The notes: generated by a model from the sequence alone, not told the origin. A stretch of DNA of 64,000 nucleotides from Anaeramoeba ignava BMAN (GCA_028826165.1 JAPDFW010000060.1:310001-374000); one strand, 5' to 3'; shown: positions 1 to 64,000, counted from the stretch's first letter. Numbers and translations: made by a program.

Positions 1-3000
1 TAATTTTCGGAAAAAGAAAGAAAATCAAACTCAAAATCAAAATCCAAAAAATATAGAAAAGATAAAGCAAGTTAATCATCAAAATATTCATGAATCAAAT
101 CAAATCAATCTTGTAAAGAATGATTTTGAATTAGCAAATTCAGAAAAAACACAAAGTTCAGATTTGGAAATCATTGATAATGAAATAGATGATGATTATG
201 ATAATTTTAATAATAGAAATCAAAACCAAAACCAAAACCAAAATCAAAATCAAAATCAAGAATTTAATATTGAAAATGATGAAAATATTGAAAATGATTT
301 TTTACAACAAATCTCAGAATCAATTCAATCCAAAAAGGCATGGTGTAAAATTACAGTTTCCCAAACAAGTAAAATAAATATGAAATTCCCGTCAATTGCA
401 ATTGATCCTGAAAAAGGAGCATGCATGAAAATAAAAGGAAAATTAAATCAAATTCATATTGAATGGAATGAATTAGGATCAAGATTTTGTCTTTCAGGTT
501 TAATTTTAATTTCAATTTCAAAATAATTTTAATTTAATTTCAAAATAATTTTAATTTCAAAATAATTTTAAATCAAAAAAGATTCTTTGGAAATAGATGC
601 TAAAATACAAAGTCCTATTAATTGGATGGATGAACATAATTGGATTTTTACACTTTCATTTTTGAAACCTTCATTCTTTTATTTAGCAAGACACCAAAAT
701 CTGTTTCAATCATTAATATGGCTTTGGACTGCACCTGTTGCAAGATCAACTAAATTCCAAAAACATATGCAAGAAATGATGAATCAATCATGTTTTTTTG
801 TTCCTACTAAATTTCACTTTATTGTTAATTGTTCTGATTATAATTTCTCTCTTTGTACAAATGATTTTAATATTATTGAAGGAACTGAAAAACAATCCCA
901 AAATAATCTTCTTGTTTTTTCTGGTCATCGATTTTTAGCAAATATTTATCTTGGAGGTGTTGAATTTGATCCAAAAACTAATGAAACAAAATTTGATTTA
1001 AATTTTGAAAATTTAACAATCGCATTTTTTCCATCAGAATCAAGTCAAATTTGGAAAAGAAAAAGGGAATCTGATAAAGAAAAATGTTTTCTTTCAAATT
1101 CACAAAATAAAGTGAATAATGAAAATCGAAATGAAAATCAAAATCAAAATGAAAATCAAAATCAAAATCAAAATCAAAATGAAAATGAAAATGAAAATGA
1201 AAATGATGATTTTAATATTAATGAAAATATTAATGATAATGAAAATAAAATGTGCAAAATTAAATCAAAAAATGAAAAATTATTTACCAAATCACTTAAA
1301 ATATCAGCTATTTATCAAGTAAATACTTATTATGATCCAAAATTTGTAGATGTTTTTCTAATTAATGTTGAATTTTTGAATACAAGAAGTGGACTTCAAG
1401 GATATTTAATTACACAATATTTTAATTTTATTTTCAATTATTTTGGAGGGAATTCTCAAGATAAAACAACAACTCAATTTAATAATGAAGCATTCCATCG
1501 AATTAGGAATTCTCAAAATTTAGTCGATTCAGTTTTTTCATATAATCATCATCATAAAAATCAAAATCAAAATCAAAATCAAATACAGAAAAGAAATATA
1601 TTTGAAGTTTCAATTAAATGTTTCTTCAAAAAATTTGTTGGATATTTGCCCTTAAATCTTTATTCCTCGCAAAAGAATATCAGAGTCAAAATACAAGAAG
1701 TTTCTCTTGATTTCTTTTCAGGATTTGCAACAAGCTGTCTAATTGTTTCAACAACACCAATTATTTTCCATTTTCCTAAAACAAATCATTTATTACAAAG
1801 CTTTGCAAACCAAAAAATTGAAAAGAAAAAAGAAGCAAATTGTATTCGAATTGATTCATTGAATTTTCTTATGGAATCTGATTTTTATCGCTTACCTAAT
1901 ATGATTGATATAATTCCTATCGATAGAATACTTAGTCTTAACTTTGGGAATATTGATGGGATTTGTCAAATAGAAGATCTTGTTAATCTTTCAACTGCAT
2001 CTAGTTTTTTTCTTTTCCATTATTGGAATTCTTCAGATGCATCTATTGTTTTTGATCGCAGCAAAATTGTCAAATTACTACAAACAATTAACACGCTTGA
2101 AATGAATATTTCTCGAGTTTCATTAAATATTAATACTCCTGAAGGCATAATAACTTTGAATATCAATGAAAACTTATCTTTATTCTCTCATTGTCTATAT
2201 ACTTACACATACAAAAACAAAATGCAAATTCAAATCCCAAAATTTCAATTAAAATTTTTCATTCCTTTTCATAAAATCTCAGAAAATTTTGAATTTTCTC
2301 ATTTAAGTAAAGTGTCTCATTCCCATTTTCAGAATCAAAAAATAGATAATTTGAACGATTCAAATAAAACAGTTCGACAATCAAGGAATTCAAACAGTTT
2401 TATAAGTCAAAATATCAATGAAAAATCAAAATCAAAATCAAAATCAAAATCAAAATCAAAACCAAAATCAAATTCAGAATCAAAATTAAATTCAAAATCA
2501 AAATCAAAATCAAAATTAAAATCAAAATCAAAAACGATATCCAAATCAAAAATCATTTCAACATCAAATATTGATGAAAAATCAACTTATTCAGATTCTT
2601 CTAAATATCATTATCTTCAAGTAGGATATTTTGAAACTTCTTTTAATATTGAAATATTCGATAGAAGTGATTTAACTGAACAAGAAATTAAGTATCAATG
2701 GGAATTATTAAATCTCCAAAAAAAGCTTGTTGCTTCTTCATCAATAAAATACAAATTTAGTAAATTTTTGCAACGAGAACAACAAAAACGAGAAAATTCG
2801 ATTGTAAAACGTAAAACATCTAGTATCAATATAAAAGAAGAAGATTTGAATCAAGATTTGAATAAAGATTTGAATCAAGATTTGAATAAAGAAGAATCAA
2901 TCGAACAAAATACTAATATTTCTGGAAATGAAAATGAAAATGAAAATGGAAATGAAAATAATGAAAATGGATGGGATGTTTTTGATAATACTAAAAATAA

Positions 3001-6000
3001 CGAAAATTTAAATGAAAATGAACAAAAAGAAAGCATTATTGAAGATGCATTTCATGAATTATCTTCACTTTATCAACAAAGTGGGAATAATAATGAACTT
3101 AGTCTTTCTGATTCAGAATTTTATTCAGTTCTTTCCAAAGATCAAAATTTGGATGAAAATCAAAATAATAATAATAATAATAATTTTGATAATGATAATG
3201 ATGATAATAATAATAATAATTTAAATTATGGAAAATCACTTGAAAAACAAACAAGTCTGTCAGATTCTGATTTCGTTTCATTTTCTGATGAAGATTTAAA
3301 TAGCCAAATTGAATATGGAGATCTAAATCAATACAAAATGAACAAACTTAGCAATAAAATAAAAAAACATAGGATTTTTTATAAAAATATTGATAAATAT
3401 GAATATGAGAATGAAGATGAAAATGAAGATCATGATGAATATGAAGATGTTGATGTTGATGATTTTGATGAAATGAGAAAATATTACGAAGGATTTGAAT
3501 ATTTTGATGATTCAACAAGTGGAAGAATACGAACATGTGCTCCAATATTAACATATGCCAAATATTTGTCATCATATCAAAAACAAAAATCATATCAAGA
3601 ATTTTTGGAATATTTCTTTATTCTCCCCAAAAAGAAAAGATTTTTTTTTATAATGGAAAATCAAGATGAAAATGAAAATGAAGATGAAAATCAAGATGAA
3701 GATGAAAATGAAAAATTCAAATACGGAGATAACTCATTCTATTTATCCAAAACATTAGACTTCTTTTCTCAAATCTCCAAGATTCAAAATGAAACGATCA
3801 AATATCAAAATTCTCAAAAAAGAGGTTCAAATGAAAAATTCCTGAAAACATTATCACTTCTAAATCATTTTTCATCCAAATCAAATATTTTCAAAGATGA
3901 TCTTCAAAATATCATTTCTGGAAATTCAAATTTATTTATGCAAAGAAGCACAATATTTATGGAGATACCAGAAAGAACGAAACTGAAAATAACACCAAAA
4001 GTTATTAAGATTCTTGAAAGCACTTTTGATGATTTATTTGATGAAACAGATTTTGAACTTATGGTTGATTCAGTCACGAAAAGGAATCAAATAAATTTTT
4101 ACGAACCACCATCAAGAGTATCTTTGACAAGAATTCTTCAAGTCAATGAATTACTCTTTTCGCATAAACAATATAAACTCCAAGCAAATGAATTTTGTGT
4201 GACTTTTTTAACAGGTACTTTTCTACCTAATCGAGAAGATTTGGAATTTTTGATGGATTCTAATGATGTTATAAAAACCAAATTTGTTCTTAAAAATTTG
4301 GATGTAAATATGAATGAATTTTCCAAACAATTCGTTTTCAAATTTCGAGGTTTTTCCAATATAAACAATATGTTTCTTGATGGATATTCAAATTTTGGAA
4401 TGAAGGACGTTCAAAATAGAAAGGAAAAACAAAAACCTCCAAATTTTTCTCAAGATTTATTTTCTCGATTTAAAAAGGAAGAAATTTCAATTTTAAAGGA
4501 ATTTACTTTGAATATTGAAGAAATGGTTCTTTTTGTTGCTGATGTTTTTGATGAAACAATGAATTCTCCATTAAAATCAAAATGCATTCCAATGAATCTA
4601 GCATCGCCAACAGTCATTTCAGAAAATCGAAAGAATTATCCATTAATTTTAACTTTGGATGTTGGAAAATTGGAGATTATTGGGAAGATTATCCCGAAAT
4701 TAGGTTATTGGATCGGAAATAACGAAAACCGGTTAAAAAATAATCCACTTAAAATTGATTTAAACCAATTTTTCTTGGATGTCAATCTGTCATCTATTAA
4801 TCCGATTTGTTCTGAAGTTTCTCCCATATATTTGTTTGCAAATTTCGAAAATTGGTTCTTGTGTTTTGAGAAATTTTCCCAATCATTTCGAGAATGGAAT
4901 AAAAACAGGAAATATTTCGAGAATTTTGCGAAATGGTTTTCTTCTGGAAACACTGTGCAAGAACAAGATCGAGAAGAGTATCAAGATCCAAATGATGAAG
5001 ATATTATCAATAATTTGCAAATCACAAATTGTTATGAAAAATTATATCAAGCACCTCAAAACGAAATTGAGGTTATGTACGAAGAATTTTTGAAACAGTC
5101 TTTTGACATGGATAAATATCCAAAACCCGAGAAAGCAGATCCAATACCAATGCAAAATAGACTAGCAGTTGATTTAAGAAGAATCACATTTATTATTTTG
5201 GATCAAGACCAAAAAAGGCGTGATGGAGTTTTTGATGTTCATTCAATTAAAGTGACGATAGAAATGGATCAACTTATAAACCAAAACAAAATATTATGTC
5301 AAGTTGGAACTTTCCAGTTTGAAATTCTTCCTGAAATTTTATGGTTTGTTGAAAATTTGGATCATTCTCATTATGCATCAATTACTTTAGCAAGAATCCA
5401 AAAAGTTATTAAAATTTTTGAACCCCAAATGAAAAAATCAAGAAGCAAAAATTCATTTAGCAGGAATCAATTCCAAGATAAAAAAGAAAAAACAAAGAAA
5501 TCACCAGATTCAAAGAAGAGGAAAAATACAAACCGACCATTTCAAGAAAATTATGAACATTTCAGCCAATTCTTGGATAAAACAAGAAGGGAAGATTATC
5601 AACAACACCTAAGAACTCAATCAACACCAATCCAAGACATCACAAACAACATCAATATTCAGACTGCAAATTCTTTTTTTGACAAGTTAAAAAATGCAGA
5701 TGATCAAGAAGATGAAAACGCAGAGTCTTCTGATCTTGAGCTTGAGATTGATAATGAGGATCCGAAAAATCAAACAAGAAACAATTTAAAATCAAAATTA
5801 AAATTAAAATTAAAATCAGCACAACCGAAACCCAAGACAACCACAAGCGTTACATTTTTGGTTCGTTCTTTTTCATTGAGAACTCTTATTGAGAACAAAA
5901 GCTCGTTGTTTGTTAAGTTTGATGATCTTTTCATGAATCTATATCACTATCAAATCCCAAAATATTTAGAGATGAGAAAACAAGACGATGAAAAACAACT

Positions 6001-9000
6001 TATATTTTCAGTCATTTTAAAGGCATCTAAAACACGAGCTTTGCTCGATAGCGTAGATAAATTTTCACAATTCAAATTATTTGATGGAACATGGAAAAAA
6101 ACGCAATTGAACGTAATTCACTATTTGTATTTCCGTCCCAATTCAAACTCCAATAAAGAGCATTCTTCATTCAATCAAAATGGTCGGGGAATTAGTGCTT
6201 ATTTGAACATATCTGATACGGAAACATTTTTCCCAATATTTTCGGGATCTTCAAAAACCGAAACACCGTTTAGTACTCTTTTTGATATTTTCAATTCTTT
6301 TGCATATATTCAAAAAGAAATATCAATTCATTCAAAAAAAGGAACAAATTCAGAAAAAACAACAAAGATTTCAAGCAGCTTAAAATTCGACTCGCAAACT
6401 CACGAAGAAACATCAAGAACAAAGCAAAATATCAATATGGAAAATATTTACAAAAAGCCCTCAATAGAATCTCAACCTCAATCAACTGCTGCGAGAAATC
6501 TTTCATCTTTGGAATGCAAATTTTCAATGAGTTTTCATAATTTGAAGTTTAAATTTGAAATTTTACCATCAAAAATTCTTCAATATCATCTCCATAGTTC
6601 AACAGTGTTAGTGGATTACAATGCAAATAGTATTCGAGCAAATTACATGATCTCATCACATAATATCCAATTTTCTGACCTAACAAACACAAGTGAATTA
6701 CCGTTTTCTTCGTTTCAACTACCAAGATTATTTCTTGATCTTGGGTATGAATTCCAACATCAAGAAAGCTATTCGAGATTAAGTCATTCGGAACAAAGCG
6801 AGATGAGAAATATATACAATAGCAATCCATCACTGTTAAAAATCAGTTCGACAGTGCACCAAAATTTGAAGGTTGTTCTTTCAATGGAAAGAATTGAAAA
6901 TATTATCCAGCCAGATTCGATCCAGCAATTAATCATGTTTCAAAGATGGATCCAGCAAGAATTCAAGTCGATTATTGACCAATACTTCTCAAATCAAGCA
7001 CAAAACGAAACCGAAACGCCAAATGTTGAGTCGGTTTCCCAATTCACAGGAGTAACAACATCACAATCTTCCACAATGAACCAATCGACTTTATCCAACA
7101 AGCTTTTGATATGGGCTACAGTTTATTTTGGGGGATTGATGATCACTCTTCATGGCAAAAATATCGATCTTATTTACGATTCGGGATTCATTTCCTTTGT
7201 GTTTTATAACAATCTGAATTCGTTATCAATACAAGATGAGAATCAACGCAAATTTTTCTGGAAATTTAATATCTATGATTCTGGATTTGGAATTTTCAAC
7301 AGAACAAAAGACCAAAATTCCAAAAATGCAAAAAAACCCAAGTTCCGTTACATCAAAGAAAATATCGATGATTTCGATAATTCAAAGGTGATCTTCCAAT
7401 TCGAAATGAAAAACTTTTCTGAGCTGCAAAAAAACTCATTAAAAATTCAATTCAACTCGATTTACGCGACTTTATGTCCTTCTTTTATGAGCAATTTCTT
7501 GGAAATATTTAATGAAATGAAAAGAGTGATTTCGAGACATGAAAATCATTTCTCATTTTCTGAGCGAAACAAGCAAGTTTTCCAGCATTTGATTGAAAAA
7601 TATGAAATCAAAGAGCATCTTCAGATGGGACTCATAGAAGGTGAGAAACTCCTTTCTGAGCATTTGTTCATTTGCAAAGTGAAGGATATCCGAATTTTCC
7701 TTCCTTTTAAAGTGTCAACTTTCTCAAAAGACCCAAATAACAACAATTACAAAATACCGAAAAGCCACAAAAAAGCCAGAAGAGAATCGCAGAAAAACAC
7801 AGAATATCTCACTGCTCTCGTGATCAGTTTGGGGTTGTTTCGGTTAATTGGGAGAGTCAGGAAAATTAGCGATGAAAAAAACCAAACGGATTATTATCAA
7901 CTTTTTTCTGAATGGGCAAATGAAACAATTTCAATCACATTTAATGATCCAAAGGAATGGTGGAAAAACTTGAATGAAATATATCCACAGGCAAATCTGT
8001 TTAGCCAAAAAAATATGAAGGGAAATGTTCTTTTTGTATTCTCCAAGAATTTCCACAATGTGTTCTGTTTCAATTCATGCATAATTGATGGAATCCAATT
8101 CCAATTTTTCCCGTCAATTGGCAAAAATTTGGTTTCATTTGAGAAAAATTGGATCAATAATTTAAGTAAAAAGAATCATTCATCAGTGAAAATTTTGGAT
8201 GATATTGATGAGAACCAAATGAAATATGAAACCCAAGAAAATATTATTAAATTATCCAAATCTGAAGCAAAAGAACTTCAGAATTCGCTTCGTTTCCAAA
8301 ATTCACAATTTGTTTTTGAAATCAAATTTGCCATTTCTGGAGCGTCTATTACTGTTTTTCCTGAAAATCATGGCACTTCCTTTCGTGGAATTTCTTCAAA
8401 AAAACCACAAAATTTATTTGAGATTCCAAAACATAAAAGAACAAAGAAAAAAGGAAATCAATTTGAATTCAACTCGATAATTTCCAAGAAAATCAATACT
8501 TTGCAAAGAGAAAATCGAAATCCAATCGCAAAAGAATCGCAAACAATTTACTTACCAAGTTTGAATACTGAAATTTATTTCAAGAAAATGAACAAAGTAA
8601 ATGAATCCAAAGTTTTGGTTTCAATTCCAACTCAGCCATCAATAATCGAAATTTCTAGTCAAGTTTCTGCGTTTATTATACAGGTTTTGGATGATGTTTT
8701 TCCCTATATTTCTCAAAAATATTCTCTGCAAAAAGAAGTAAGAAAAAAGCAAACTGTTTCTGCAAATGATAATATCAACAAAGTATTTGAAGTGCAAAAA
8801 ACAAAATCCAAAATGAACTTCATTTTCAAATCCGGTGCTCTTTCTATTTCCTTTTCTGCAAACCCTTTTGCTGATATTGTATTTAGAACTGATGTAGGAC
8901 CTATTTATTTCATTACGAATTTGGATTTTAATGGAAATGAAAATGTTATCAGTATTTTAGGTCAAATTTCAAGTATTCAGTCAAGAATTTCCAATTCTTT

Positions 9001-11482
9001 TTCAACAATTGAATGTTTTAGTGTTCATCTTCAAAAAACCCAAATGTGTTATAATTTTTATAAAAATCTAATTCAAAATGAAACACCTTCACCAAATTCG
9101 CAAAAAAAGAACAACAAATCTTCTTCTTTAATTGAATTTGGGTTGTTGAATTTGAATTTTAATTTGCGAAATTTGGAACAATATTTTAAGTTTAGAGAAA
9201 TTTGGATTGCACCATTTTATTCTTTTAAGAGGAAGTTAGATATTTATTCGAAGAAGAAAGTTCATCATTTCTCATCTAAATTTAAAAATAATTTGAAACC
9301 AGATTCAAAATCAAATTTAAAACAAAATTTAAAACAAAATTTAAAACAAAATTTAAAACAAAATTTAAAACAAAATTTAAAACAAAATTTAAAACAAAAT
9401 TCAAAACAAAATTTAAAACAAAATTTAAAACAAAATTTAAAACAAAATTTGAATGAAATTGAAAATGAATTTGAAAATGAAATTGAAAATGAAATTGAAA
9501 ATCAAATTGAAAATGAAAATCAAATTGAAAATCAAATTGAAAATGAAATTGAAAATGAAAATGAAATTGAAAATGAAAATAAAAATCAAAATAAAATTGA
9601 AAATCAAATTGAAAATAAAAATCAAATTGAAAATCAAATTGAAAATGAAATTGAAAATGAAAATGAAAATGAAATTGAAAATGAAAATCAAATTGAAAAT
9701 GAAAATCAAATTGAAAATAAAAATCAAATTGAAAATGAAAATGAAAATCAAATTGGAAATGAAAATGAAAATCAAATTGAAAATCAAATTGAAAATCAAA
9801 ATAAAATTGAAAATGAAAATGAAAATGAAAATGAAAATCAAATTGAAAATGAAAATGAAAATGAAAATGAAAATGAAAATAAAATTGAAAATAAAATTGA
9901 AAATGAAAATGAAAATGAAAATGAAATTGAAATTGAACTTACAAAAGATCAGTTTAGTGATGATTCTTCTTTTATGTCTTTTGAAAATAATGAAAATATT
10001 GTAAGTGATGATGATAATGAATCTACATCTTCATCAGAAAGTAATGAATCAAATGATGAAATTAAACAAGAATCCACTTTCCTTCATTCTATTATTTTGA
10101 AAGAAGTTGGAATTAATGGAGAACTCGGACAATCTGTTGGTAAAATAAAGGGAAAAATAGGAAGTATTAATTTAATAAGTAGGAAAATATTTGAATCAAC
10201 AAGTTTCAATGAATTATCTATTGGGATGATCAAATTGATTTTTGAAGGAAGATTGGAAGGAGTTATTGGAATTGGACACATTATATTAAAATTATCCAAA
10301 AATTATTTGGTTAATGAACAAATATGTCCTTTAAGAAAAATGGAATTTGGAATTGCAAAGATAATATCTGATCTCCAATTCAATTTGGAGAAGATTTTAA
10401 GAGTCAGAATTGAAAAAGTTTATTCTTGCATTGCAGATGTAATTGAGAACAAAGAACAAACAAGTTCTCATATCCAAAGTTTAGTTTCTTCTTTAAAAAC
10501 GCATTTCCAAGTCTCAAGTGATTTTGCACCTTCGCTTTTGAGAATTTTGGGTTTGATTTCAGACTTGGTTGAAAAAACACGCAATTCAATGGCAAATTCA
10601 GAAATTCGAAAGAATTTCCATTCTCAAATTCGAGGGAATGTGTCGCAGATTTTTGATGAAGTAAATCAAAAAGATCAAGATTTGCAAAAGAAACTCACGC
10701 AAAAAGAAGAAAATGAAGAAAATGAAGAAGAAAAAGCAAAAAATATTGCGATTGGATCACTAACATTTATTGGAGGCAATCTGAATATTGATTTATTTAG
10801 CGGATTCAGAATGCCTCAATGGGGAAACTTATTTTTTCAAACATACGCACTAAATTTCACACAAAATGTGAATGAAGAACAAAAAGAAATTCGAAGAGTT
10901 TTAACAATCAAAACAGGAATTGTTCATTTACGCAAAATTTCGGAAAAGAAACTGATTCATGACGCAGATAACACTTCAGATTCCAATGAATCATCGATAC
11001 TCGCATTCCCAGAAACTTCATTGGAAATGTTCACACAACAAGCAGAAATGAGTCCAATTGTTTTTTATTATTTCATCTCAAATTTTGCCGGGCCAATTCA
11101 AACAACTTTGAATGTTGGTTTATATCGATTTTTAACGGAATTGAAAGAGACATTCGCATCAAGAATAAGGGATTTTTATGAACGAAGTAGCAAAAGAGAA
11201 GTTATTTATGATCCTGATTTCAATTTCCAAATTGATCCACTTTCTGAATCAAATGAAAAGAAAGAAAAAGATTTCAAAGAAACAAGAGTTTTTCATTCTT
11301 TAAAATATTATTTTAATCCTCAATTAAGTGTTTTAGGAAGAGCTACTCCAAAAGTAGAAACTGTTTTAGGTCTTCTTGGAATTAATGATCAACATATGAT
11401 TCCTTCGTTAACTCATCGTTTTATAACTGATTATGTTGAAAAAGTTCAAGAATTGATTTTCTTAATTATGAAAAAAATATAA
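1..11482 (+). CDS. BLTP1: Bridge-like lipid transfer protein, BLTP1/KIAA1109/Tweek/Csf1-like; 5' end lies outside the window; exons <1-497 and 582-11482
   Basis: Open frame from base 2. A GT..AG intron at 498-581 joins ORF 164-526 to the 3631-aa ORF in frame (CLS-D-SLEIDAK). The N-terminal segment (SPINWMDEHNWIFTL...LFQSLIWLW...FFVP..FHF...LCTNDFNII) and the C-terminus (FNPQLSVLGRATPKVETVLGLLGI...IP...HRFITDYVEKV) resemble BLTP1/Csf1 conserved regions as I recall them. Contains long Asn/Glu/Gln low-complexity inserts. Confidence 0.75.
9310..9935 (+). repeat. Coding tandem repeats (AAACAAAATTTA)n = KQNL and (GAAAAT/CAAATT)n = ENEI/ENQI inside the BLTP1-like gene
   Basis: Directly visible 12-nt and 6-nt periodic repeats, in frame. 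Confidence 0.9.
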
Positions 11483-11608
11483 GAAGAAAAATCAAAATCA
11501 AAATCAAAATCAAAATCAAAATCAATTTAATTTTTTATTCTTTCAATTCAATTCAATTATTTTAATTTTGATTTTTTGAAAATTAAAAAAAAAAAAAAAT
11601 TTTGAAAA

Positions 11609-14600
11609 TTAAAATAATTTCTTCAATGAATCTTTAAGTAAATCTTTTGGTGTTGTTCCATTTTCAAATTTTTCATTTTCAATCCACCATATTCCTTCAA
11701 TTTTCAAATTAAAATTAGCAGTTGTTTTTTTCAATAATTCAATCATTTCTTTTGTAGTTGATTGATTTCGACAAAGAAAATGTAATGGAGAAAACTAAAA
11801 AATCAAAAATTACAAATTTAATTAGTTTTTTATAAAATACTTTGAATTAAATTTTACTCCCTTTTTGATTCCAAAAAAAATAAATAATTAATTAATTAAT
11901 TAATTAAATTTGAATATTTTCTTTCTTTTTACTTTCTAAAAAATTAAAATTTATTTTAAAAATTTTATTTAAAATTTCATTTAATTTATATTGATTTGAT
12001 TAAATTAAATCAATATAAATTAAATCAAATTAAATTCAAAAATTTACTTTCTAATTTATTCATTTTAAATGATTAAGAAAAAAATTTAAATTATATAAAT
12101 TTAAATATAAATTAATAATTTACTTTCTATTAAATAAAATTTTCATCATAAAAATACTTAAACTCTTGTTTTCTTTTTCTTTTTCTTTTCGTTTTTTTTT
12201 TTTTAAAATTATTATATACATCCTATTAAATTTGGAATTTAATAATCAAAAAAATTTATTGCTTTTTCTTTATTAAATTAATTTACATTCTTTTAATTTT
12301 TAAATTTTATTAATCCTTTTTTTTTTTTGATTTTTTGATTGATTAAATAATTAATATTTTTAAATACAATCTATTGAATAAAAATTTTTTTTTGGTTTTT
12401 TTTAATTATAATTGTGTAAATGATTTTTAATTTATTACCCATTGGTGATTGAAATCAACTCCTTTAGAAATTAAAACTAGAATCATATCTATTTTTAATT
12501 TATCATTCTTGAATAAATAATGAAGAGGAGACCACTAGAAAAAAAAAAGGATTGATGTTTTTTCTTGAATAAATTGATTTTGTTTCTTTTTTTTTTTTTA
12601 TTCAAAAAATTTTACTAACTTTTTATTTTATTAAATTATTTTCGAAAATAAAAATATAAAATATTTAAAAATAATTCCTTTTTTTACTTCCTATACAATT
12701 ATGATTTTATTAATATTATTAATTGATTTAAATTTTGAAAAAAAAAAATAAATTTACAAGCTGGATAATGTTGAAAATTTAATATTTTTATTATTTTTAT
12801 TATTTTTCCAAATTTACTTCCTAATTTTTTGATTTAAGATGATTTAATTTTCTAAAATAAAATAATTACATTCTTTATTATAATTGTAAATTTGAGAATT
12901 TTTTTAAAAAAAAAAAAAAGATGATTGATTGATTGATTGATTGGTTTACTTTCTGTTTTAAATGGATTGACTAATTAATGAAAAAAGAAATGAAAAAAAA
13001 AAAAGTTTGAAATTTACCAACTATTGTTGATAGATCATTTTAATAACAATTAATTATTATTTATAAACATGAAATATTCATTGATTATATTCTTAATTTT
13101 AGGTATTTTACTTTCTATTGAATAAAAAATGAATGTTATAATAATTATTTTGATTTTGAATGAATAAATTTATTGATTTTTTTTTTCTTATAAAAATAGA
13201 TTACATATGAAATATGAAAATCACCACCTTTTTTGAGTATTAATTTAATCATATTTGCTGTGATTGATTGATTTCTACATAAATCATGCAAAGGAGTATA
13301 CTTTTTTTTTATGTAAAACAAAATTTTTGTTTTTTTTTTAATTTTTGAAATTATAAAATGGTTTTTCTGTTTTTATTTATTTATACATCCTAAAAAAAAA
13401 TTTGGATTAATGTATTTTCAAAAATTAACTAATAAAAGATTTGTCTTTTTTTTACATACTAATTTAATTTATATTTTGTTAAAATCAATTGGAAATGATC
13501 TTTTTTAAATTTTATTCAACAAAAAAATCCATTTTTTTTACATACTGTTAAAAAAGAAGTTTTATAAATTTGATGTTTTCTTCTTCTTTTTTATAAATTA
13601 ATTTTATTTGAGATTTTTACATTCTATTTCAATATAAAAGAAACAAAAAGTTAATTTCCAAAATAATTTATAAACATTAAACAAAAAACTATTTTATAAA
13701 TATTTACTTTCTTTTTTAATACAAAAAATAAAATAAAGAATTGAATAATAATTTTGGAAATTTATTTATACATCCTATTTTGAATAAATATAAATATAAA
13801 TATAAAATGTTTTTGGAATTGAATTCAGTTTTTTTTTTTACATTCTGTTTTGCAAAATTTTTTTAAAAAAAATATTGTTTTTATTCATGAATCTTTTTTT
13901 TGTTAAATTATTTACTTTCTAAATTTTTTTTTCAAAATGAAAAAATGATTTTTATTAGATATATTGTTTCTATTTTCTTTCTTATTGATAATTGTAATGG
14001 TTTTTAAAAGTTTGATTTTAATTTGTGTTTGTTTGAAATGGATGCAAAAATAATTGATATTTTTTTTTTCAATTTTGGTTTATGATAATTTACATTCTAT
14101 TTTAATTCAAACAAGAAATGTATTCATTTCAGAAAATAAATTGTTAGAAAAAAATAATATAAAGTAATGTACCCACTATATTCAGAATTAAATTTATTTT
14201 TTTTGTATTTAAAATATTAAAAATAAATTTTTTGTTTTGATTATTTAGTTTATATTTTACGCGCTATTATTTATTAAGAATATATTGATTTAATTTTTTT
14301 TAAAAAAAAACAATCAGAAACTAAATGAGAAATGAAATTTACTCTCTAGAAAATTACAAAAGAAATGAATAAAATTTAAGGATAAATTGGATATAAGAAA
14401 ATAGGGAACGAAAAAATTTTAATTTTTGAGAAAATAATTACTCGCTAATTATTAATATTGAAATATCATTTGAGAAAAAAAAGTTGTTCAAAAAAAATAA
14501 AAGAATGAAAAACTTACACCACTTAAATTAAAATTAGCTCCTTTAAGAGCAAATAATTTGAGCATATCAAAAGTAATTCTTTCATTTCTACATAAGTAAT

Positions 14601-17600
14601 GAACTGCAGACCACTTTTGAGAATAGATTTAAATGTAAAAAAAAGAGAACGTTTGTTTATCATTAAAATATTTTTATGTTGAAGAAAAAAACTAAAATTA
14701 AAAAGTACTTTCTAGGAATTGTTTTTTTTTTTGAATAAATGAGAAAGAAATATGAATCAAGTTGGATTTATTTTTATATTTTTTTTTTTACATACTATTT
14801 TCAAAAACAAAAAGTAACAAAGATCAATAAATTTATTTCAAGCAAAAAAATGCAATGTTTGTTCATTTTTTTTTTACATTCTAATGAATAATATTTAGAA
14901 ATAATTTTATCATTCCAACTTCAAATTTAAATAATTTACATTTTGAATGTTTAAATTAATTCCGAAATCGATCAGTAATTTAATAATTTCGAAATTAATT
15001 GATTTATTTAGGCAAAAATAATGAAGTGGTGTTTCCTTTTTTAAAAGAAAAAAACATATATATTTGAATATTGAAAAAAATTACTCTAAATTTTAGGAAA
15101 AAAAAATTACTCCCTAAAACAAAATCAATTATTTATTTTTTAGAAATTTGATTTATAAATTATAAATTATAAATTTTTTACTTGCTTTTCCATTTCAAAA
15201 ATGAAAAATAAAAATCATTTGATTTGATTTTTTTTTAATTATTACTTTCTATTTTTTGTGTTTTTTGTTATTGTTTAAAAATATTTGGAAAGTGAATATT
15301 AAATAAATAAATACATCTTGTTTAGTTAATTGGGATTTTTTTTTTAATAATTTTTTCAAAATATCGAAATCAATTGTTTTTTGATTTGCAAAAAAATGAA
15401 GGACAGTTGGCTAATTAAGAAAAATGAAAGATGAGAATGTAAAGTTTTTTATAAAAACAAAAAAGTTGATTAAATTATTTACATATTTTGATTTTTTGGC
15501 TTCTTTTTTTAACAATTGGATATTCGTCTTTTGTGTTTCTATTAAATTTTCTATTGGAATAAATCAATAAATAATCGGAAAATTTTGAAATGATTTTTCT
15601 TTTTTGATGATTTACTTTTCCTTAATGTAAATTCCTTCTGAATTTCTATTTGTTTTGATTGTTTTTTTTTTAATTGATTAATTAATAAAAAATATTTTGG
15701 ATTAAAATGAATTGAAAAAAATTTTACCTTTTTTATCGAAACCCAAAACTTCTAAAGCTTGAATTCCTTTATTGTAAATTTCTTTATCCTCTGAAAAATT
15801 GAGCATTACTGAATTTATTATGTCAGATCCAAGATTGCCTTCAATTTGTTTTTTGTTTGCTTTTTTTTTTTGAGGGAAAATGTAATAATTTTTTGAATTT
15901 GAACTTGAATTTGAATTTAATTATTTACCTTTTTCTTTTCCAATATTAATAATAATTGAGAAAGATTGGAGTTGAAGAATTTTATTATTTGGAAACTGGA
16001 TCATTGTTGAGAAAATTAAATTAATTCCATTTAAATTTGGAAGATCAAATGAAATTGCTTTTTTTTTTTTTTGGATCATTTGAGAAAAAAAAGAACAAAT
16101 TTAAATTAAATTAAATTAAATTAAATTTTAAAAATGTATTTTCCAAATTACTCTTTTTTATATCAGTTAATTTTCTTAAAGCAAAACAACAAGCTTGTTG
16201 AATAAATTCATCTGATTTAAAATCCTTCATACTTTGGAAAATGAAAGAAATATCCATATCCATTAATTTCTTTTTTTTATCTATTTTTGTTTTAAATAGC
16301 AAATGAATTTTGGATTTGATTTTGGATTAAATTTTGAAATTTACTTTTGTCATTCTCTTCAATCGATTGATAAAGTTTTTTAAAGTAAATAGTTGCTTTC
16401 TTTTTTAATAAAGAATTTTGTTGTTCTTCTTTTTTTTCGGGAAATATATCCAGTTTATTTTGGTATTTATTTCGATGAGGTAAACTGTAAAAATTTTGTG
16501 CCAATTGGTTGTTTTGTTGAACAATTTTTTGATTAGTCTTTTTGTGTTTGAAAAATGAAAGAATTAATTTTCAAATCAAAATCAAAATCAAAAAGAAAAA
16601 GAAAATTTATTATTACCATTGTAGAATAGTCAAATTTGCTATTTTTATTTTGTTTGATAGGAATAACATCTTTTATTATTTTCGGTTTTTCTTTTTCATT
16701 TTTTTGATCTGATTCTTTTTCATTTTTTTGATCTGATTCTTTTGTTGAATCTGAATCTGAATCTGAATCTGAATCTGAATCTGATGTTGAATCTGAATCT
16801 GATGTTGAATCTGATGTTGATGTTGATGTTGAATCTGAATCTGATGTTGATGTTGAATCTGAATCTGAATCTGAATCTGAATCTGATGTTGATTTTGATT
16901 CTAAATATGTATCTGATTCTGTTTCTTTTTCTAATTCAGATTTAGATTTAGATTCTGATTCTGATTTAGATTTAAATTTTGAATTTAGATTTTGATTTAA
17001 GTTTTGATTTAATTTTGATTTTGATGATTTTGATTTGGATTTAGATTCTGATTTTGGTTTTGATCTTGAATCTAAATATGAATTTGAATCCAATTCTAAT
17101 TCTGTTTCTGTTTCTTTTCCAGATTTAGATTCTGATTTTGATTTTGATTTTGAATTTGATTTTGATTTTGATTTTGATTTTGATTTTGATTTTGATTTTG
17201 ATTCTAATTCTGATTTTGATTTTGGCTCTAAATTTGAATTTGAATATATTTCTACTTCTGATTCTGATTCTTTTGTTGATTCTGATTCTTTTGTTGATTC
17301 TGATTCTTTTGTTGATTCTGATTTTCTTTTGTTGATTCTAATTTTTTTGATTCTGATTCTTTTGTTGATTCTGATTTTGGATTTTGATTCTGATTCTTTT
17401 GTTGATTCTAATTCTTTTGTTGATTCTGATTTTGATTCTTTTGTTGATTCTGATTTTGATTTTGATTTTGATTTTGATTCTTTTGTTGATTCTAATTCTG
17501 ATTTTGATTCTGATTTTGATTCTAATTCTGATTCTGATTCTGATTTTGATTTTGATTCTTTTGTTGATTCTAATTCTGATTTTGATTTTGATTTTGATTC

Positions 17601-20040
17601 TTTTGTTGATTCTAATTCTGATTTTGATTTTGATTTGGATTTGGATTTGGATTTTGATTTTGATTTTGATTCTGATTCTGGCTCTGATTTTGATTCTTTT
17701 GTTGATTCTGATTTTGATTTAGATTTTGATTCTGATTCTTTTGTTGATTCTGATTCTTTTGTTGATTCTGATTTTGATTTTGATTTAGATTTAGATTTTG
17801 ATTCTTTTGTTGATTCTGAATCTGATTTAGATTTTGAGTTTAAATTTGCATTTAATTTTAATTCTGATTCTGATTCTGATTCTGATTCTGATTTTGATTT
17901 AGATTTAGATTTTGATTTTGATTTTGATTTAGATTTTGATTTTAATTGTGATTCTGATTCTGATTCTGATTCTGATTTGATTAATGAAGTTAGATTTGAT
18001 CTTAGTTCAGATTTTGGATCTAAATATGTTTTTAATTTTGATTTTAATTTTGATTTTAATTTTGATTTTTGTTTGGGTTTTATTTTGGATTGTTTTGAAT
18101 CTAGATATGAATCTTTTTTAATTTCTTTTTCTTTTTCTTTTGTTTTGGTTTTTTGAATTTTTCTTAATTTTGATTTTAGTTTTGATCTTGATCTTGGTTT
18201 CGGTTTTGATTGTAATTTTGGTTTTAATTTTGGTTGGGATTTTGATCTTGATTTTAATTCTGGTTTTAATTCTGGTTTTGATTTTAGTTTTGGTTTTGAT
18301 TTTGATCTTCCTTCTGATTTTAATTTTGATTTTGGTTGTTTTGATTTTAATTCTGATTTTTTTCTTGATTTTAATTCTGATTTTTTTTTTGATTTTGATT
18401 TTGGTTTTGGTTTTGGTTTTAATTTTGATTTTAATTTTGATTTTAATTTTGTTTTTGATTTTAATTTTGATTTTAATTTTGATTTTAATTTTGATTTTGT
18501 TTTTGATTTTGTTTTTGATTCTGATTTTAATTTAGATTCTGGTTTTGCTTTTGATTCTTTATCTAATTCTGATTGATTTATTTGTAATTTCTCGTTAAAA
18601 GGATTATCTTTAGCTTGTTCAATGTTCAATTGATTTGGAATTTGATTTGGAATTTGATTTGGAATTTGATTTGGAATTTGATTTGGAATTTGATTTGGAA
18701 TTTGATTCATAAATTGATTTGGAATTTGATTTGGAATTTGATTTTGGATTTGATTCATAAATTGATTTGGGATTTGATTCATAAATTGGTTCATAAATTG
18801 ATTCATGAATTGATTCTCTAAGTAATTTTAATTTTAATTTTAATTTTAATTTTAATTTTAATTTTATAAATGAATTTTATAAATGAATTTGAATTTTATA
18901 AATGAATTTTGATTTTGATTTTAATTTTAATTCTGAAAATTATTTACTTTGATTTTTCATATTATTTAAGTTTTCAATAAATTCATCCAATGAACATCTT
19001 TCTTTTGGAATTTTATTCCATCCCTTTTTAATTACTTCTGTTAATTGCTTTGGGAAATCATCTGGAAATTCGGGTCTTTCATCATTCATCAATTGCCTAA
19101 CAATCACCATTGGATTTTCATTTTCAAAAACTTTTTTCATTGAAAAAATTTCAAATAAAATGATCGATAAACTGAAAATATCACAAGAAATATCATAAGC
19201 ATTTCCTTGATTCAAAAGTTCTGGAGCTGAATAACCAAATGAAAATGAAACTGTTGTATTTTTCATTGTATGTTGTAAAAGTCTTGAAATTCCAAAATCA
19301 GTAATTTTAGGTTGATTATATGAAATCAAAATGTTTTCAGGTTTTAAATCACGATGAATAATTAAATTTTTATGAAGATAATTAATTCCCGAAACAATTT
19401 GTAATGAGAATTCAATTTTCTCATCATATGTTAAACTTGGGATTTTTTGTGATAAATTTCCTTGTTCTGCATATTCCATTAAAATTCCCAAAGTATTATC
19501 AAATTCGACCATTCCATAAACTCGAATAATATTTGGATGATTTAATTGAACAGCTAAAGTAAGTTCATTTTGAAATTGTTGTTTTAATTTTGGATCGTTT
19601 TGTATTCTCAATTTCTTCAGAACAACCTCATTAATTCCCCATTTTGCTTTATAAATATCAGCTGATCCACCATAAGCAAAAGGTTGGTTTTCAATATTAA
19701 GTTGAGATAAAGGAATAATTGGAGCATTTGGAATATTTGGATTATTTTGAATATTTCCATTATTTTGAATATTTTCATTATTTCCATTATTTCCATTATT
19801 TCCATTATTTTCATTATTTTGAACTGGCAAATTTTTTTGCATTTCTTCAATAACTTCTAATAAACCCCGATTTTGAATAACTTTGAAATTTTCTAAAGTT
19901 GTTCTGCAAAATGGACATTCTTCCATGTTTTTTAAACAATGTTCACAAATTGAATGTCCTGATTCACATACAATCATTGGTTTTCTTTGTTCTGAATAAT
20001 CTTCAAAACAAATTGGACAAGAATATGCTTTTAATTCCAT
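11609..20040 (-). CDS. Gene A: RING-HC + TKL-like protein kinase + low-complexity linker + ARM-like repeats + 6 ankyrin repeats with microexon-encoded loops
   Basis: Exons: 20040-18948 ([13 protein letters not shown]...CPFC RING; [16 protein letters not shown] kinase), 18817-16617 (S/K/E low complexity), 16537-16345, 16280-16152, 16057-15929, 15859-15728 (ARM-like: [64 protein letters not shown]), 15645-15616, 15550-15483. Ankyrin exons: 15410-15315 (PTVLHFFA), 15035-14940 (ETPLHYFC), 14613-14518 (WSAVHYLC), 13300-13205 (YTPLHDLC), 12534-12439 (WSPLHYLF), 11794-11609 (FSPLHFLC...stop). All introns are GT-AG and the phases join without stops. Confidence 0.85.
11858..15248 (-). other. Gene A single-codon (3-nt) microexon arrays, 34 microexons in 5 arrays
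   Basis: Plus-strand motif (T)AC-NNN-CT = minus-strand AG|NNN|GT. In transcript order, by lowest coordinate: K15246 Q15182 G15111; N14878 Y14792 K14709; R14442 R14343 R14261 W14173 N14094 K13916 N13842 D13772 K13708 N13621 Y13542 Y13456 D13387; K13112 L13018 K12950 N12870 E12818 L12758 E12688 L12616; I12368 N12287 D12220 K12124 K12048 K11933 G11858. Confidence 0.85.
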
Positions 20041-21965: not shown

Positions 21966-22045
21966 TTTTCAATCCAAAATTCAAAAGAAAAAAAATAATC
22001 AAATTGTAATGTGTCAAAAAAAATGAAAAATCATTTGTTTTGTTT

Positions 22046-25000
22046 TTAAATCAGTTTTTGAAGATGATTAGGAAGAAAATCTTTTGGTGTTGTACCATAA
22101 GAACTTTTTATAGAAAAATCAGCATTGGTTCCTTTCAATAATTTAATCATTTCTTCTGATAATAATGGATTTTGACAAAGATAATGCAATACAGTTGCCT
22201 AAAAAACAAATATTTTTTTAAGATTTTTTTTAAGATTATTTTTTTGGATTAAATTTACTCCCTATTTAATTTTTAAATGATATATTTAATTCATTTGTTA
22301 TTTGGAAATAAATTTTATCTTATTATTTACAGGCTAATTAATTGAATTTAATAATAAAAAGTAAATCAAAATTTAATTTTTTAAATCAATTTACTTGCTA
22401 TTTAATCAATTATCCATTTTTTTATTTGGAAATCAAAAATGAATTTAATTAATTTGTTCTAAAAAAAAAGAATTAAATAAATTTATCATTTACTCCCTTT
22501 TATTTTTGGAAAAATTTTCAAATTAAAATGTTTGGAATCATTTAAAAAAAATTTTAAATAAATTTTTTACTTGCTATTAAGGAATTATTTTAAGAAGAAA
22601 AAAAGAAAAATTTAAAAATATCAAATTATTTTTGCATTTATTTACTTCCTATTTATTAAATTTTAATTTAAAGTTAGAATTTAGTTAAAATTTGAATTTA
22701 TTTTTATTTAGGAAATATTATTTATTTACATCCTATTTAGAATTTAAATTTAAAATTTAGAATTTAAATGAAAATTAAACTTGAATTTTAAAAAATTTTT
22801 TTTTTGATTAATATAAGATTTATTTACAATCTATTTAATAATTTTCAATCCAAATAAAAAATTTTAATAATTATCAAAGAAAAAAATTAAATAGATTTTT
22901 ACAATTTGTAAATTGAAATTTGATCCACCTTTAATCAAAATATCAATCATTTCTGTTGTAATTAGGTTGCTCAAGGATAGAAAATGAAGTGGAGAGTACT
23001 AAAAAAAATAGGAAGAAAATTAGTTAAATTATTGATTTTGATTTTGATTTTGAATTCATTTACTCCCTAAATTTTTTATTAAATTAAATTAAATTAAATT
23101 AAATTAATTTTATTTTATTACTCTCTGTTTATTCAATTAAAATATTATTTTTATTTTTAAATAATTGTTCAAAATTAAAAAATAATTTAAAATTTACAAA
23201 CTATTTTATTTAAAATTTAAGTAAGAAAAATATTTTATCATTAATTTTTATTAATTTGATTTACATACTAATTTTATTTCAATTTAATTTTTAATCTCAA
23301 AAAATATTTTTTTTGTTAAATTTTAATTAAAAATTTAAATGATTACTGCCTGATTATTTATAAAGAAAAAATATTTATATTAATTATTAAATCAAAAAAA
23401 AAGATTATTTACATCCTAAATTCATTAATAAAATTTAAGTTTAGTTGAATTTTTCTTTTAAACATTTCTAATTTTACTCCCTATTTGTTAAAATATTCCA
23501 TTAAATAAAAGGAAATCATTTCAAAAAAATTTTTTATCATTTCTAATTTACTTTCTGTTTCATAAAAATTAATAAGAAAAATGTTTATGATTAATTTCAA
23601 ATTTATTTTTGTTTTTATCTATTAATTATTTTACAATCTATTTATTATTATTTTTTTCAAAAAAAAAAAAGCAAAATTGAAAATTGAAAAAGAATTTAAT
23701 AACAAAAATATAAAAAAATCTTAAGATGAATAATTTACTTTCTATTTGATTTACATAAAAATTAAATCAAAAATTAATCTAATTTTAAAAAATTTATTAT
23801 AAATTTTTACCCATTGAATATGAAAATTAGCTCCATTATTAATTAATAATTCAACAATCTCTTTTGTAATTGAAGGATTATTACATAAATCATGCAAAGG
23901 TGTATGCTTTTTTATATGTAAAATAACAATAATAAAATCATTTTAATATTGAATAATTTAAAAAAAAAAATATTTTTCTATCGTTTTATTTTACATCCTT
24001 TTGTTTGTTTATTTTTTGGAATAATTAATTAATTCAAAATTTTTATCAATAAAAAAATGATTGATTTTATATTTTTTTTACAAACTAATTTTAAATTTTA
24101 TTATTTTTTTATAGGGAAATTATAATCAATTTAATAAGTAATTTTTGATTTTTTTTTTTGAATTATTTACATGCTATTTTATAAACACAAAAAAAATCAT
24201 TTCAAAAACAAATTAATAATTAAAATAAAAGAAGAAAGAATAAATTTAAATGATTTACATTCTATTTTTATTATTTTTATTATTTTTATTTAAAAAATAA
24301 ACACAATTTATTTGATAATAATAATAATTATTATTATTTTTACAGCCTATTTTTTTTTGGATTGGAAAATAAAAAGGATTAAAATTCTGAAAAAATATTT
24401 ACTTGCTAATATATTTAATTATATTTTAATATTATTAGAGAAAAAAAATATGTTTTTCCCTTTTTAAATAGTTTACTTGCTAAAATTATTTTGTTTTTCA
24501 ATGATATGTTTATTATTTCTCAAAAAAATTTAAGAGATAAAAATTTACTCCACTTAAATTCCAATTAACTCCACGTTGAACTAATGCATAAATCATTTCA
24601 AATGTAATTGATGGGTTTCTACACAAGTAATGAATAGGAGACATCTTTTAGAAATGTATGAGAAATGTTAAATTAATAAATATTATTGAAAAATTATGTG
24701 AATCTTAAGAAAAAAAGAAGAAGAAGAAAATGAATTACTTGCTAAAAATGAGTTTTGAGAAAAAGAAATTCAAATTCAATTCTTTTTGGATTTAAAAATA
24801 GTTAAATTTTTACAAACTATTTCCCATATAAAAAAAAGGGAATGAAAACAAAAATTAATTTTTTTTATCTTGAAATGATATTTTTTTACAGTCTATTTGG
24901 GAAATAATTTTGAAAAATTTTATCAAAAACTTGATTTCAAAAGAAAAGTTTAAATTAAATATTTATTTATTTACATTTTGAGAATTAAAACTATATCCTT

Positions 25001-28000
25001 TTTCCCTGAAGAATTCAATAATCTCTGTTGTTATTGATGGATTTTTAAAAAGATAATGCATTGGTGTATCCTTTTTTTTGTTTTATTTTAAATTTAGTTT
25101 CGATTTTTATTTTTATTATTATGATATTTTTTTACTTCCTTTTTTTTTTAAGAATTTTTTTTAAGATTTTAAGGAGCAAAAAAAAAACAAATTTTATTTT
25201 TACATCCTTTTTTTTTGGAATTCCAGAAAATAATAAATAAATTTTGTTAATTCAAATTAATAAGATTACTTTCTATTCAATTATTCATAAATAAAATTAA
25301 AAATGAAATTAAAAATAAAATTAAAAATAAATTTACTTCTTTAGAATAAAAATCGGTTCTATAATGTGCCACTAATTTAATGATTTCCAAATTTATTGAT
25401 GGATTTTGGCATAAATAATGTAATGGTGTTAACTTTGATTTTTTGATTAATTTAATTGAAAAGAATTTGGGATAAATAATTTAATTTTCATTTTATTATT
25501 TTTTTACTTCCTATTTCAATCATTTTAAAAATGAATAAATTTTTGATTCAATTCAATTTAGAAATCCTTTGTTATTTTTACATCCTTTTTATTTCAATTT
25601 TAAATAATTTTAATTTTTTAAATAATTTTTTTTTATGTGGTTTATTTTTTACTTCCTAAAATTTTCAATTTCGTTTTAAAAAAACAAAAAAAATGAATAT
25701 TTTTATAATCAATAACAAAAAAATCAAATTCAAAATTTACTCCTTTTAAATTAAAATTAGCTCTATAATCAAACATTAATATTATTATCCTCAAATTAAT
25801 TGATTCATTTTGGCATAAATAATGAATTGGTGTATTCTTTTTAAATATTTGAAGAAGAAGAAAAACAAAATTAATTTTAATTTTAAAATTAAAATATGAA
25901 TTACTTTCTAAAAAATAATATAAATTAATTCAAATAAATTTAAATAAATATTTTAGATAAAAGTGTTTTTTGTACAGCTGCGGTTTTTTGGAATATAGTC
26001 TACAAAATAAAAAGAAAGATTAAAATAAGTTGAAATTTTTAGATTAGATCAAAGATTTGTTTTTTGATTTAGAATTACTTTCTAGATTTTTATAATTTTA
26101 ATATTTTTTTTTTAAAAAAAGGAATTAAAATTTAATAAGAAAAAAATGTTTTGTTTTAGATATTTGAATAAAATAATTTATACATCTCGTTTAGTGACTT
26201 CTGATTTTTTTTTCAAAAAAATTTGTAAAATTCCAAAATCAATTTCTTCGTTCTTTTTTGCATAGAAATGAAATAAAGATTCCTAAATTTTTTAATCAGA
26301 AAAAAAACAAACATTTTTGAAATGTTGATTAAATGAATTTTCTTCTCAATTGTTTTTTTTTAAAATTTTATTTGGAAGAAAAAAAGTTTACCTGTGACCA
26401 AACATTGAAAAACTATTTTAAAACAAAATAAAAATAAATAAATTAATAAATAAATGAATAAATAAATGAATAAAATAAATAAATAAATAAATGAATGAAT
26501 TCTTGTTAAAAATATGTGATTTACATATTTTTTTTTATTAAATTCTTCTTGTAATGCTTTTAATTTTTTTTGATCTAGTTTTTCTACATGACCTAATAAA
26601 AATAATTTCATAATTTTTCAAATTAAAATTTTTTCTTTTTGATTTTGGAAAAATGAAACAATATTTTTACTTTTCTTTAAATTAAAGTTTCGAGTAATAT
26701 CTATTTTGTTTTTCAAATAATTAGATTAAAATAAAAGAAAGGAAAATTAATTAATGAATTATTAAAATGAAAAAAGGAAAAAGATTGGATTATCTATTTT
26801 GTTTTGTTTTGTTTTGTTTTTTATTGAAAAATATAAATTTACAATTTTGACCAAATTCTAAACGTGTTAAAGCTTCAGTTCCTGTATAAAAAATCTTATT
26901 ATCTTCTGGAAAATTAGCCATTGTTGAAAATATTGTATCATCTCCAGAATATTGTTTAATTTGGCTTCGATTTACTTTGGTTTTTGATTAATTAATTTTT
27001 TTGATTAATTAATTTTTTTGATTGATTAATTTTTTTGATTAATTAATTTTTTTGATTGATTAAAATGAAATTTACGACTTGATTTTCCCATTTGAAAAAG
27101 AATTAGTAAAGATTGAAGTTGAAGAAATTTTTTGAATGGAAAATTATTCATTGCTTTGATAATTAAATCAAATCCATTAAAATCTGGAAAATTAAATGAA
27201 ATTCCTTTTTTTTTTTGGAAAGAAAAATTAATAGAGTTTTGAAAATTAAAATTAATTTAACAATTTTTACTTGTTTCTGCTTCAGTGAATTTTCTTAGAG
27301 CCATACAACAACTTTCTTGAATAAATTCATCTATTGGAAAGGCATTCATAGATTGAAAAATAAAATTAATATCAATTTCTTCTAATTTTTCTGAGGTATC
27401 TTTTTATTAAAAAATGGAATAAATTGGATTAATTCATTTTACACATTTTTTCATTTGATTTAAACAATATGAATAAATATTTACTTTGATCATGTTTGCG
27501 AATTGAATCTCGAAGTTTTTGGAAATAGGGTTTAAGTTCTTTTAATGCATTTTTTTTTGCTTCTTCAGATTTTTTTTTTTCTTTTTGGATTTCCAAAGTT
27601 CGTACTTTTGCTATTACTTCATCAAGTATTTTTTGTGCAGTCTAATTGTTTTGTATTATTTTTTTTTTGTTGAAATGGAAATGATTGAAAATTTAATCTT
27701 TTTTTTTTTTATATTTCTTAAATATCAATGTTTTACCTTCAAATCAACTTCTGATTCTGATTCTGATTCTGGTTCTGATTCTGATTCTGATTCTGATTCT
27801 GATTCTGGTTTAATTTCATTTGATTTGTTTTGTTTTGAATCTTGTTCATTTGAAGGATTTGATCTGTTTTGGTTTTGGTTTTGGTTTTGATTCTGATTCT
27901 GGTTCTGGTAGGATTAATTTTGTTTCGATTTCATTCATCTCCTTTTTAACGATATTGTCTATATAATTGATTTGTTCATTTGAATTTTGTTCATTTGAAT

Positions 28001-63806: not shown

Positions 63807-64000
63807 TAAAAAAATGAAATGAAAATAAAAACTCTTTTGGTTTTGTTGAAAAAAAAAATTATTTGATCTTTTGATCAATTGATCTACTTTTTTGTTTTTT
63901 TTTTTTTTGTAAATTTTAATTAAAACAAAAATCCAAAAAAAGGATCAAATGATCAAGTTTCTTCTTTTTATTTCTTTTGTTTTTTGACAATAAAATGGCT

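Follow-up and report, generated by a model that had tools for sequence, protein, structure and literature searches.

The window analysed here, a stretch of 64,000 nucleotides from Anaeramoeba ignava, carries ankyrin-repeat genes (A, B and C) in which the exons encoding the repeats are separated by runs of exons of a single codon. This layout raises the question of what such runs contribute to the protein and whether all of them are used. A sequence-only reading had proposed that the longer runs encode three adjacent variable loops on a conserved scaffold, forming an antibody-like paratope, and that the shorter ones complete an ordinary ankyrin hairpin and are probably constitutive. The window is extremely A+T-rich eukaryotic DNA (GC 8-33% per 2 kb), in agreement with the published figures for A. 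ignava (genome 80.65% A+T, introns 91.86% A+T; PMC11550330), and use of the standard genetic code is shown by one uninterrupted 3631-codon ORF. The Anaeramoeba genome paper (PMC11550330) makes no mention of ankyrin or microexons, and a literature search found no paper combining Anaeramoeba with microexons.

Gene A lies on the minus strand and contains 28 exons of 3 nt between 11858 and 14444, in arrays of 13, 8 and 7 between ankyrin scaffold exons of exactly 96 nt each, phase 0, with two further three-exon arrays upstream. Scaffold exon 1 (15315-15410), a 32-codon open frame flanked by AG and GT, is followed by array 1, which encodes K-Q-G (15111-15248, with exons at 15246-15248, 15182-15184 and 15111-15113). 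Scaffold exon 2 (14940-15035) is followed by array 2, encoding N-Y-K (14709-14880, with exons at 14878-14880, 14792-14794 and 14709-14711). Next come scaffold exon 3 (14518-14613) and array 3, the thirteen 3-nt exons of long loop 1 (13387-14444; upper coordinates 14444, 14345, 14263, 14175, 14096, 13918, 13844, 13774, 13710, 13623, 13544, 13458 and 13389). Scaffold exon 4 (13205-13300), which bears the HDLC motif of the family, precedes array 4, the eight exons of long loop 2 (12616-13114; upper coordinates 13114, 13020, 12952, 12872, 12820, 12760, 12690 and 12618), and scaffold exon 5 (12439-12534) precedes array 5, the seven exons of long loop 3 (11858-12370; upper coordinates 12370, 12289, 12222, 12126, 12050, 11935 and 11860). 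The terminal exon of 61 codons (11612-11794, stop codon at 11609-11611) carries the last ankyrin repeat and a conserved C-terminal cap, together with a further variable hairpin, the fourth, at about 11657-11704. The 32-residue scaffold exons lack the three beta-turn residues (x-x-G) of the repeat, and the three-exon arrays supply exactly these, rebuilding the canonical N-x-x-D/x-x-G/x-T-P-L-H hairpin. The restoration of the hairpin by the short arrays had thus been read correctly.

The microexon units were located by scanning for every AG/NNN/GTR on the minus strand. The motif occurs 117 times on this strand of the window against 14 times on the plus strand, and its occurrences form three clusters, at 11-15 kb, 22-26 kb and 44-52 kb. 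Between 11838 and 14464 the minus strand has 29 sites and the plus strand none, compared with a chance expectation of 0.8 on average and 5 at most in 500 dinucleotide-preserving shuffles. Moreover, stop codons are absent from the 127 units in the window but make up 8.6% of the triplets in the region. Across 372 microexons of the family the consensus is AAATAG/NNN/GTAAA, and introns inside the long arrays have a median length of 71 nt (interquartile range 64-82). As a source of the arrays, tandem duplication of a unit made up of exon and intron was considered; Tandem Repeats Finder detected no period of about 75 nt, and the arrays are therefore not recent unit duplications.

Transcript contigs were examined over window positions 11500-15500, covering gene A, in two RNA runs (X3 and X4) and two DNA runs (X1 and X2). 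In run X3, all six gene A scaffold exons are matched by contig rec15 (1658 nt, depth 71.6), with pieces at 15315-15410 (exactly scaffold exon 1), 14940-15035, 14518-14613, 13205-13300, 12439-12534 and 11616-11794. Between consecutive pieces it holds exactly 9, 9, 39, 24 and 21 letters, counted by number and not by identity, which is three times the predicted 3, 3, 13, 8 and 7 microexons and corresponds to full inclusion; the 39 letters bridge 13300 and 14518, the 24 letters 12534 and 13205, and the 21 letters 11794 and 12439. The genomic DNA skipped at these joints ends in CT..AC, that is, GT..AG on the minus strand. The 21- and 24-letter joints recur in contig rec18 of run X4, which comes from a different sample and study. 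The joined form is absent from DNA runs X1 and X2, and contig rec2 of X1 is genomic and collinear with the genome; consequently, the joined form represents RNA rather than a processed gene copy. Furthermore, a 131-residue ORF (P0006) from the EukProt Trinity transcriptome of A. ignava holds loops of 14 and 8 residues, with the residues that the exon scan predicts for the paralog at locus L013. The predominant mRNA of gene A contains every microexon, whether its array is short or long. The short arrays are thus included, as had been expected of constitutive exons, but the long arrays are included equally in every transcript seen. Equal and complete inclusion, named beforehand as one of the outcomes that would refute the sequence-only reading, is what was found for the dominant isoform, and there is no distinction at the RNA level between constitutive short and variable long arrays.

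The layout of gene A is shared by a family, which was collected by searching the genome with the terminal exon and scaffold exon 4 and then fetching the loci. About 14 A. ignava genes (A, B, C and at least 10 others) have the same C-terminal module: a scaffold exon ending in GANFNLSG or a similar sequence, long loop 1, the HDLC scaffold exon, long loop 2, a scaffold exon, long loop 3 and the terminal exon. Loop 1 comprises 6-13 exons and usually ends in aromatic-aromatic-Asp, loop 2 comprises 5-14 exons and often starts with Lys, and loop 3 comprises 4-8 exons, often with Ile first and Gly last, but 31 in the gene at L014:7388-9656. Junctions upstream of the module have 2-3 microexons, often literally K-D-G. 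The long arrays (4-31 exons) always occupy the same hairpin-tip position at the last three consecutive junctions, as had been noted for genes A, B and C. The count of three variable loops was correct as far as it went, but it missed the fourth hairpin, which varies between 5 and 16 residues across paralogs and lies unsplit inside the terminal exon (11657-11704 in gene A, minus strand). This loop is contiguous yet variable, which shows that a loop can vary without being split into one-codon exons, and it offers a natural control for the microexon-encoded ones.

In the L014 gene (G000:C104, about 964488-966756), the 31 consecutive one-codon exons lie at the last junction, are separated by introns of 55-91 nt and include no stop codon. 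The genome search also returned matches of scaffold exon 4 on contigs C79, C42 and C108 (L022:4795-5158, L023:4889-5236 and L024:4868-5228), which were set aside as isolated, near-identical pieces and not genes. Each consists of two microexons (Y, D) and one HDLC-type scaffold exon running into an intron, and these fragments look like dispersed pseudogene pieces.

Gene B (22259-24479, minus strand) has arrays of 2(+1), 3, 3, 3, 7, 10 and 8 units in the scan, the last three being its long arrays, with scaffold exons at, among others, 23811-23906 and 22903-22998. Gene C (44137-51602, minus strand) has arrays of 3, 12, 8 and 12, the long ones approximate, and the scan adds three doubtful candidates; one of its exons is 6 nt long (GTCTCA, 44630-44635). 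The unit lists reproduce the array sizes and peptides of the sequence-only reading residue for residue, including KQG, NYK, KLKNELEL and INDKKKG in gene A (arrays 3, 3, 13, 8 and 7), QQANHFD, KIKGDAYFRG and IDEQGQPG in gene B, and the gene C arrays with KWNDESRF as loop 2, apart from the exon that proved to be 6 nt. The long introns of gene C hold two copies of a plus-strand ORF, at 45279-45623 (in an intron of about 1.45 kb in the third long array) and at 47522-47887 (about 1.3 kb, second long array); the latter, the copy that was scanned, matches a transposase helix-turn-helix domain (HTH_Tnp_4, E 2.5e-6). An oddly hydrophobic loop 3 suggests that gene C may be decaying.

The microexon residues are missing from the public annotation. 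In the models P0003 (the NCBI entry "ankyrin repeat-containing protein [Anaeramoeba ignava]"), P0004 and P0002, the scaffold exons are joined directly or, in P0002, an intron is read through, and every microexon residue is lost; P0011 is a 69-residue fragment corresponding to the terminal exon of gene C. Every public ankyrin protein model of this family thus lacks its probable recognition loops. Homology searches from P0003, P0006 and P0004 (region 500-672) for transcript-derived proteins with all three loops yielded nothing beyond public genome models and unrelated ankyrin proteins.

Structure models were considered for the database proteins P0006 and P0004:495-672. The AF2 model of P0006 confidently adopts an ankyrin fold (pLDDT 87.9, pTM 0.82). 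Beta-hairpins are modelled for loop 3 and for the loop of the terminal exon, the latter with high confidence; confidence is low for the 14 residues of loop 2 (pLDDT 59-69). Its top Foldseek matches, namely DARPins, tankyrase ARC domains and the LoopDARPin 4k5c, are all ankyrin-repeat proteins, and Pfam detects Ank_3 in P0006 (E 2e-6) and Ank_2 in P0004 (E 3.5e-17). The repeat motif and the stacked solenoid that define ankyrin-repeat proteins are both present, according to Pfam, the AF2 model and the PDB matches. In the ankyrin fold, successive repeats present their hairpin tips next to one another on a single face, and a paratope function of the loops is plausible from the models. Upstream of each of the A, B and C ankyrin blocks there is an ORF with RING and protein-kinase domains (18940-20040 for gene A) together with ARM-like exons, and gene C has an additional SH3 exon. 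These domains suggest a cytosolic protein. Upstream of the first ankyrin exon of gene A, the X3 contig ends after no more than about 780 nt; the RING-kinase ORF probably belongs to the same transcript as the ankyrin exons. No NACHT domain was matched by Pfam in P0004 or in the ORFs of the window.

Across 52 pairs of paralogs, mean identity is 0.62 for the scaffold and 0.23 for the loops, the latter close to the 0.20 of shuffled loops. The long loops thus differ as strongly between paralogs as had been claimed, being near-random on a conserved scaffold. The best explanation, to which we assign a probability of roughly 0.78, is that these genes, which encode an ARM-like plus ankyrin-repeat domain, are a family of germline-encoded ankyrin binders whose extended loops are specific to each paralog and constitutively spliced. 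Each repeat is encoded by one 96-nt exon and the hairpin tip between repeats by a run of one-codon exons, in each of which the AG acceptor and the GTAAA donor are normal. Three of these exons yield the canonical tip, and expansion to 4-31 exons at the last three junctions lengthens three neighbouring hairpins, to which the last exon adds a fourth, unsplit one. The loops would bind targets, and the ankyrin part would most likely serve target recognition, at one end of proteins that act in cytosolic signalling or as ubiquitin ligases. The antibody-like reading accordingly stands with respect to variable loops on a conserved ankyrin scaffold, but the diversity observed is that of the germline, between gene copies, and does not look somatic: contig rec2 of X1 is collinear with the genome, a single transcript form appears in the bulk contigs, and the loops differ between germline paralogs.

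An alternative is that skipping, either stochastic or regulated, removes individual one-codon exons from the long arrays, as proposed for the NANK (NACHT-ankyrin) family of the truffle Tuber melanosporum, which could generate up to 2^28 variants from gene A. All microexons begin and end in phase 0, and the reading frame therefore survives whichever subset is included. The public model P0004:495-672, which amounts to an all-skipped form, is predicted with confidence to retain an ankyrin stack (pLDDT 91.8, with AlphaFold being biased towards this fold), and skipping would therefore be tolerated in silico. Published accounts of the truffle family provide a precedent (PMC4986451, PMC9815663, PMC3689799). 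Against this, only full inclusion appears, to the same extent in short and long arrays: no skipped isoform was seen in the contigs of the two runs or in the Trinity ORF, in assemblies of a kind that drops rare variants. Loop diversity is, moreover, already present in the DNA of the paralogs. We therefore regard such diversification by splicing as unlikely. Its strongest form, in which one-codon exons are chosen independently in each cell or condition, for example on contact with symbionts or prey, would create a combinatorial loop repertoire beyond the view of bulk assembled transcripts; this is likewise improbable, and if true it would make exon choice a protist counterpart of antibody CDR diversification.

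The truffle NANK genes (Iotti et al. 2012, Fungal Biol 116:261, as described in PMC4986451, PMC9815663 and PMC3689799) are nevertheless the closest in layout to the germline-encoded binder family proposed here, as far as these descriptions go. Both are expanded families of ankyrin paralogs with tens of 3-bp exons at variable repeat positions, a feature that the scan places in A. ignava as well, and both have been proposed to encode intracellular recognition proteins. The truffle proteins carry a NACHT NTPase domain, whereas the A. ignava partners are RING-kinase, ARM-like and SH3 domains; alternative splicing is reported for the truffle genes in these accounts, whereas contigs from A. ignava show only full inclusion. 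A. ignava is, in addition, an anaerobic protist unrelated to fungi, and its arrays reach 31 exons at three fixed junctions. The A. ignava layout arose convergently with that of the truffle genes.

A second alternative holds that the arrays are a neutral by-product: hairpin tips tolerate insertions, AG-NNN-GTAAA units arise easily in introns of 92% A+T, and the long arrays would be filler with no role in recognition. Several observations fit this account. In the closely related paralogs L011, L012 and L017, microexons diverge by 3.6-8.3%, about the rate of the introns, and the loops may therefore be unconstrained. One Lys exon of L017 is two substitutions away from an (AAAT)n microsatellite tract in L012. 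Loop identity between paralogs is at the shuffled level, and loop 2 has low model confidence. The K-, D- and N-rich composition of the loops, which resembles that of low-complexity linkers, also weighs against the binder reading. The B subfamily gives a different picture. Gene B has a nearly identical copy, in inverted orientation, at a distance of about 60 kb (L016:5700-9900, G000:C61:391500-395700, against window 22000-26300), and in this comparison none of 99 microexon nucleotides differs (all 33 microexons are identical), against 1.2% of intron positions and 3.7% of scaffold positions, the latter in clustered patches. A third B-like copy, L025, differs from gene B at about 4-5 of 25 loop residues and at 14 of 64 scaffold residues. 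Within this subfamily the loops are no less conserved than the scaffold. Loops that are unalignable between subfamilies and kept within one argue against pure filler. The neutral account is very unlikely, since it sits poorly with the 0 stop codons among 127 units, with long arrays fixed at the same three junctions while the upstream ones stay at 2-3 units, with recurring anchor residues (the aromatic-aromatic-Asp end of loop 1, the frequent Ile start and Gly end of loop 3), with loops of the B subfamily conserved as much as the scaffold or more, and with a Trp content of 4.3% in loops against 1.5% in scaffold.

Enrichment of the loops over the scaffold extends from Trp to Tyr, Arg, Gly, Asp and Lys. 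In the L011, L012 and L017 trio, all 17 pairwise microexon differences (3, 8 and 6 per pair, small counts) are nonsynonymous; positive selection was considered and rejected as a conclusion, the counts being too small and the scaffold pN/pS also ranging from 0.4 to 2.2. Positions 1, 9, 11 and 32 of the scaffold are variable by entropy, as is the outer face of helix 2, a pattern that does not separate the readings. One scaffold exon of the L016 copy carries two single-base deletions, both frameshifts; substitutions in this copy are concentrated where helix 1 ends and around the hairpin base in the last two repeats.

The comparison of close paralogs also shows how the loops change in length, with exons of one codon lost or gained through changes in an AG, in a GT or of 2 nt. 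In L012, the AG acceptor of one Ile exon has been lost, and a Gly exon that is intact in L017 carries a 2-nt deletion. Loop length changes in exact one-codon steps through gain or loss of the splice sites of single microexons. The layout thereby suggests a route to the evolution of binding loops in which a residue is added or removed by one splice-site mutation with no risk of a frameshift. The same scaffold was chosen independently by protein engineers in DARPins and LoopDARPins.

DARPins and LoopDARPins (PDB 4k5c and others) share the fold of the A. ignava proteins, with a Foldseek probability of 1.00, and the microexon-encoded residues correspond to the beta-turn positions that are randomised in DARPins. 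The latter are engineered ankyrin binders, whereas the A. ignava proteins are natural, putative binders encoded exon by codon; a LoopDARPin replaces the beta-turn by one long CDR-like loop, whereas the A. ignava proteins have three to four extended loops. Tandem, symmetric, frame-keeping microexons also occur in Schistosoma MEGs and in animal neural genes, as exons of 6-36 nt or single cassettes of 3-27 nt that are alternatively spliced, in contrast to the runs of 7-31 exons of exactly 3 nt, apparently constitutive, in A. ignava. Such runs of 7-31 consecutive one-codon exons go far beyond exon-definition models of splicing and make A. ignava a natural system in which to study how the spliceosome joins 3-nt exons in series. 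RING E3 ligases of the TRIM5 type likewise form a paralogous family with a RING domain and a C-terminal recognition domain with variable surface loops. Their recognition fold is SPRY rather than ankyrin, and a kinase domain is present in A. ignava; the likeness is an analogy that does not imply an immune role.

Along the window, the RING-kinase-ankyrin genes are interspersed with genes for FG-GAP membrane proteins. The latter are three paralogous intronless genes (35868-38687 and 39957-42788, minus strand, and 55818-58652, plus strand) encoding membrane proteins of about 940 residues with FG-GAP repeats and fibronectin-III or Ig-like modules (FG-GAP_2, E 3e-54). The single 3631-codon ORF at 587-11482 (plus strand) contains long N/Q/E-rich repeats and has no Pfam match. 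Near the other end of the window, a 460-residue ORF (62496-63878, minus strand) shows weak similarity to tyrosine recombinases (Phage_integrase, E 3e-5, short of the Pfam cutoff) and is possibly a Crypton-like element; it adjoins a 284-residue ORF (60979-61833, minus strand) without a Pfam match.
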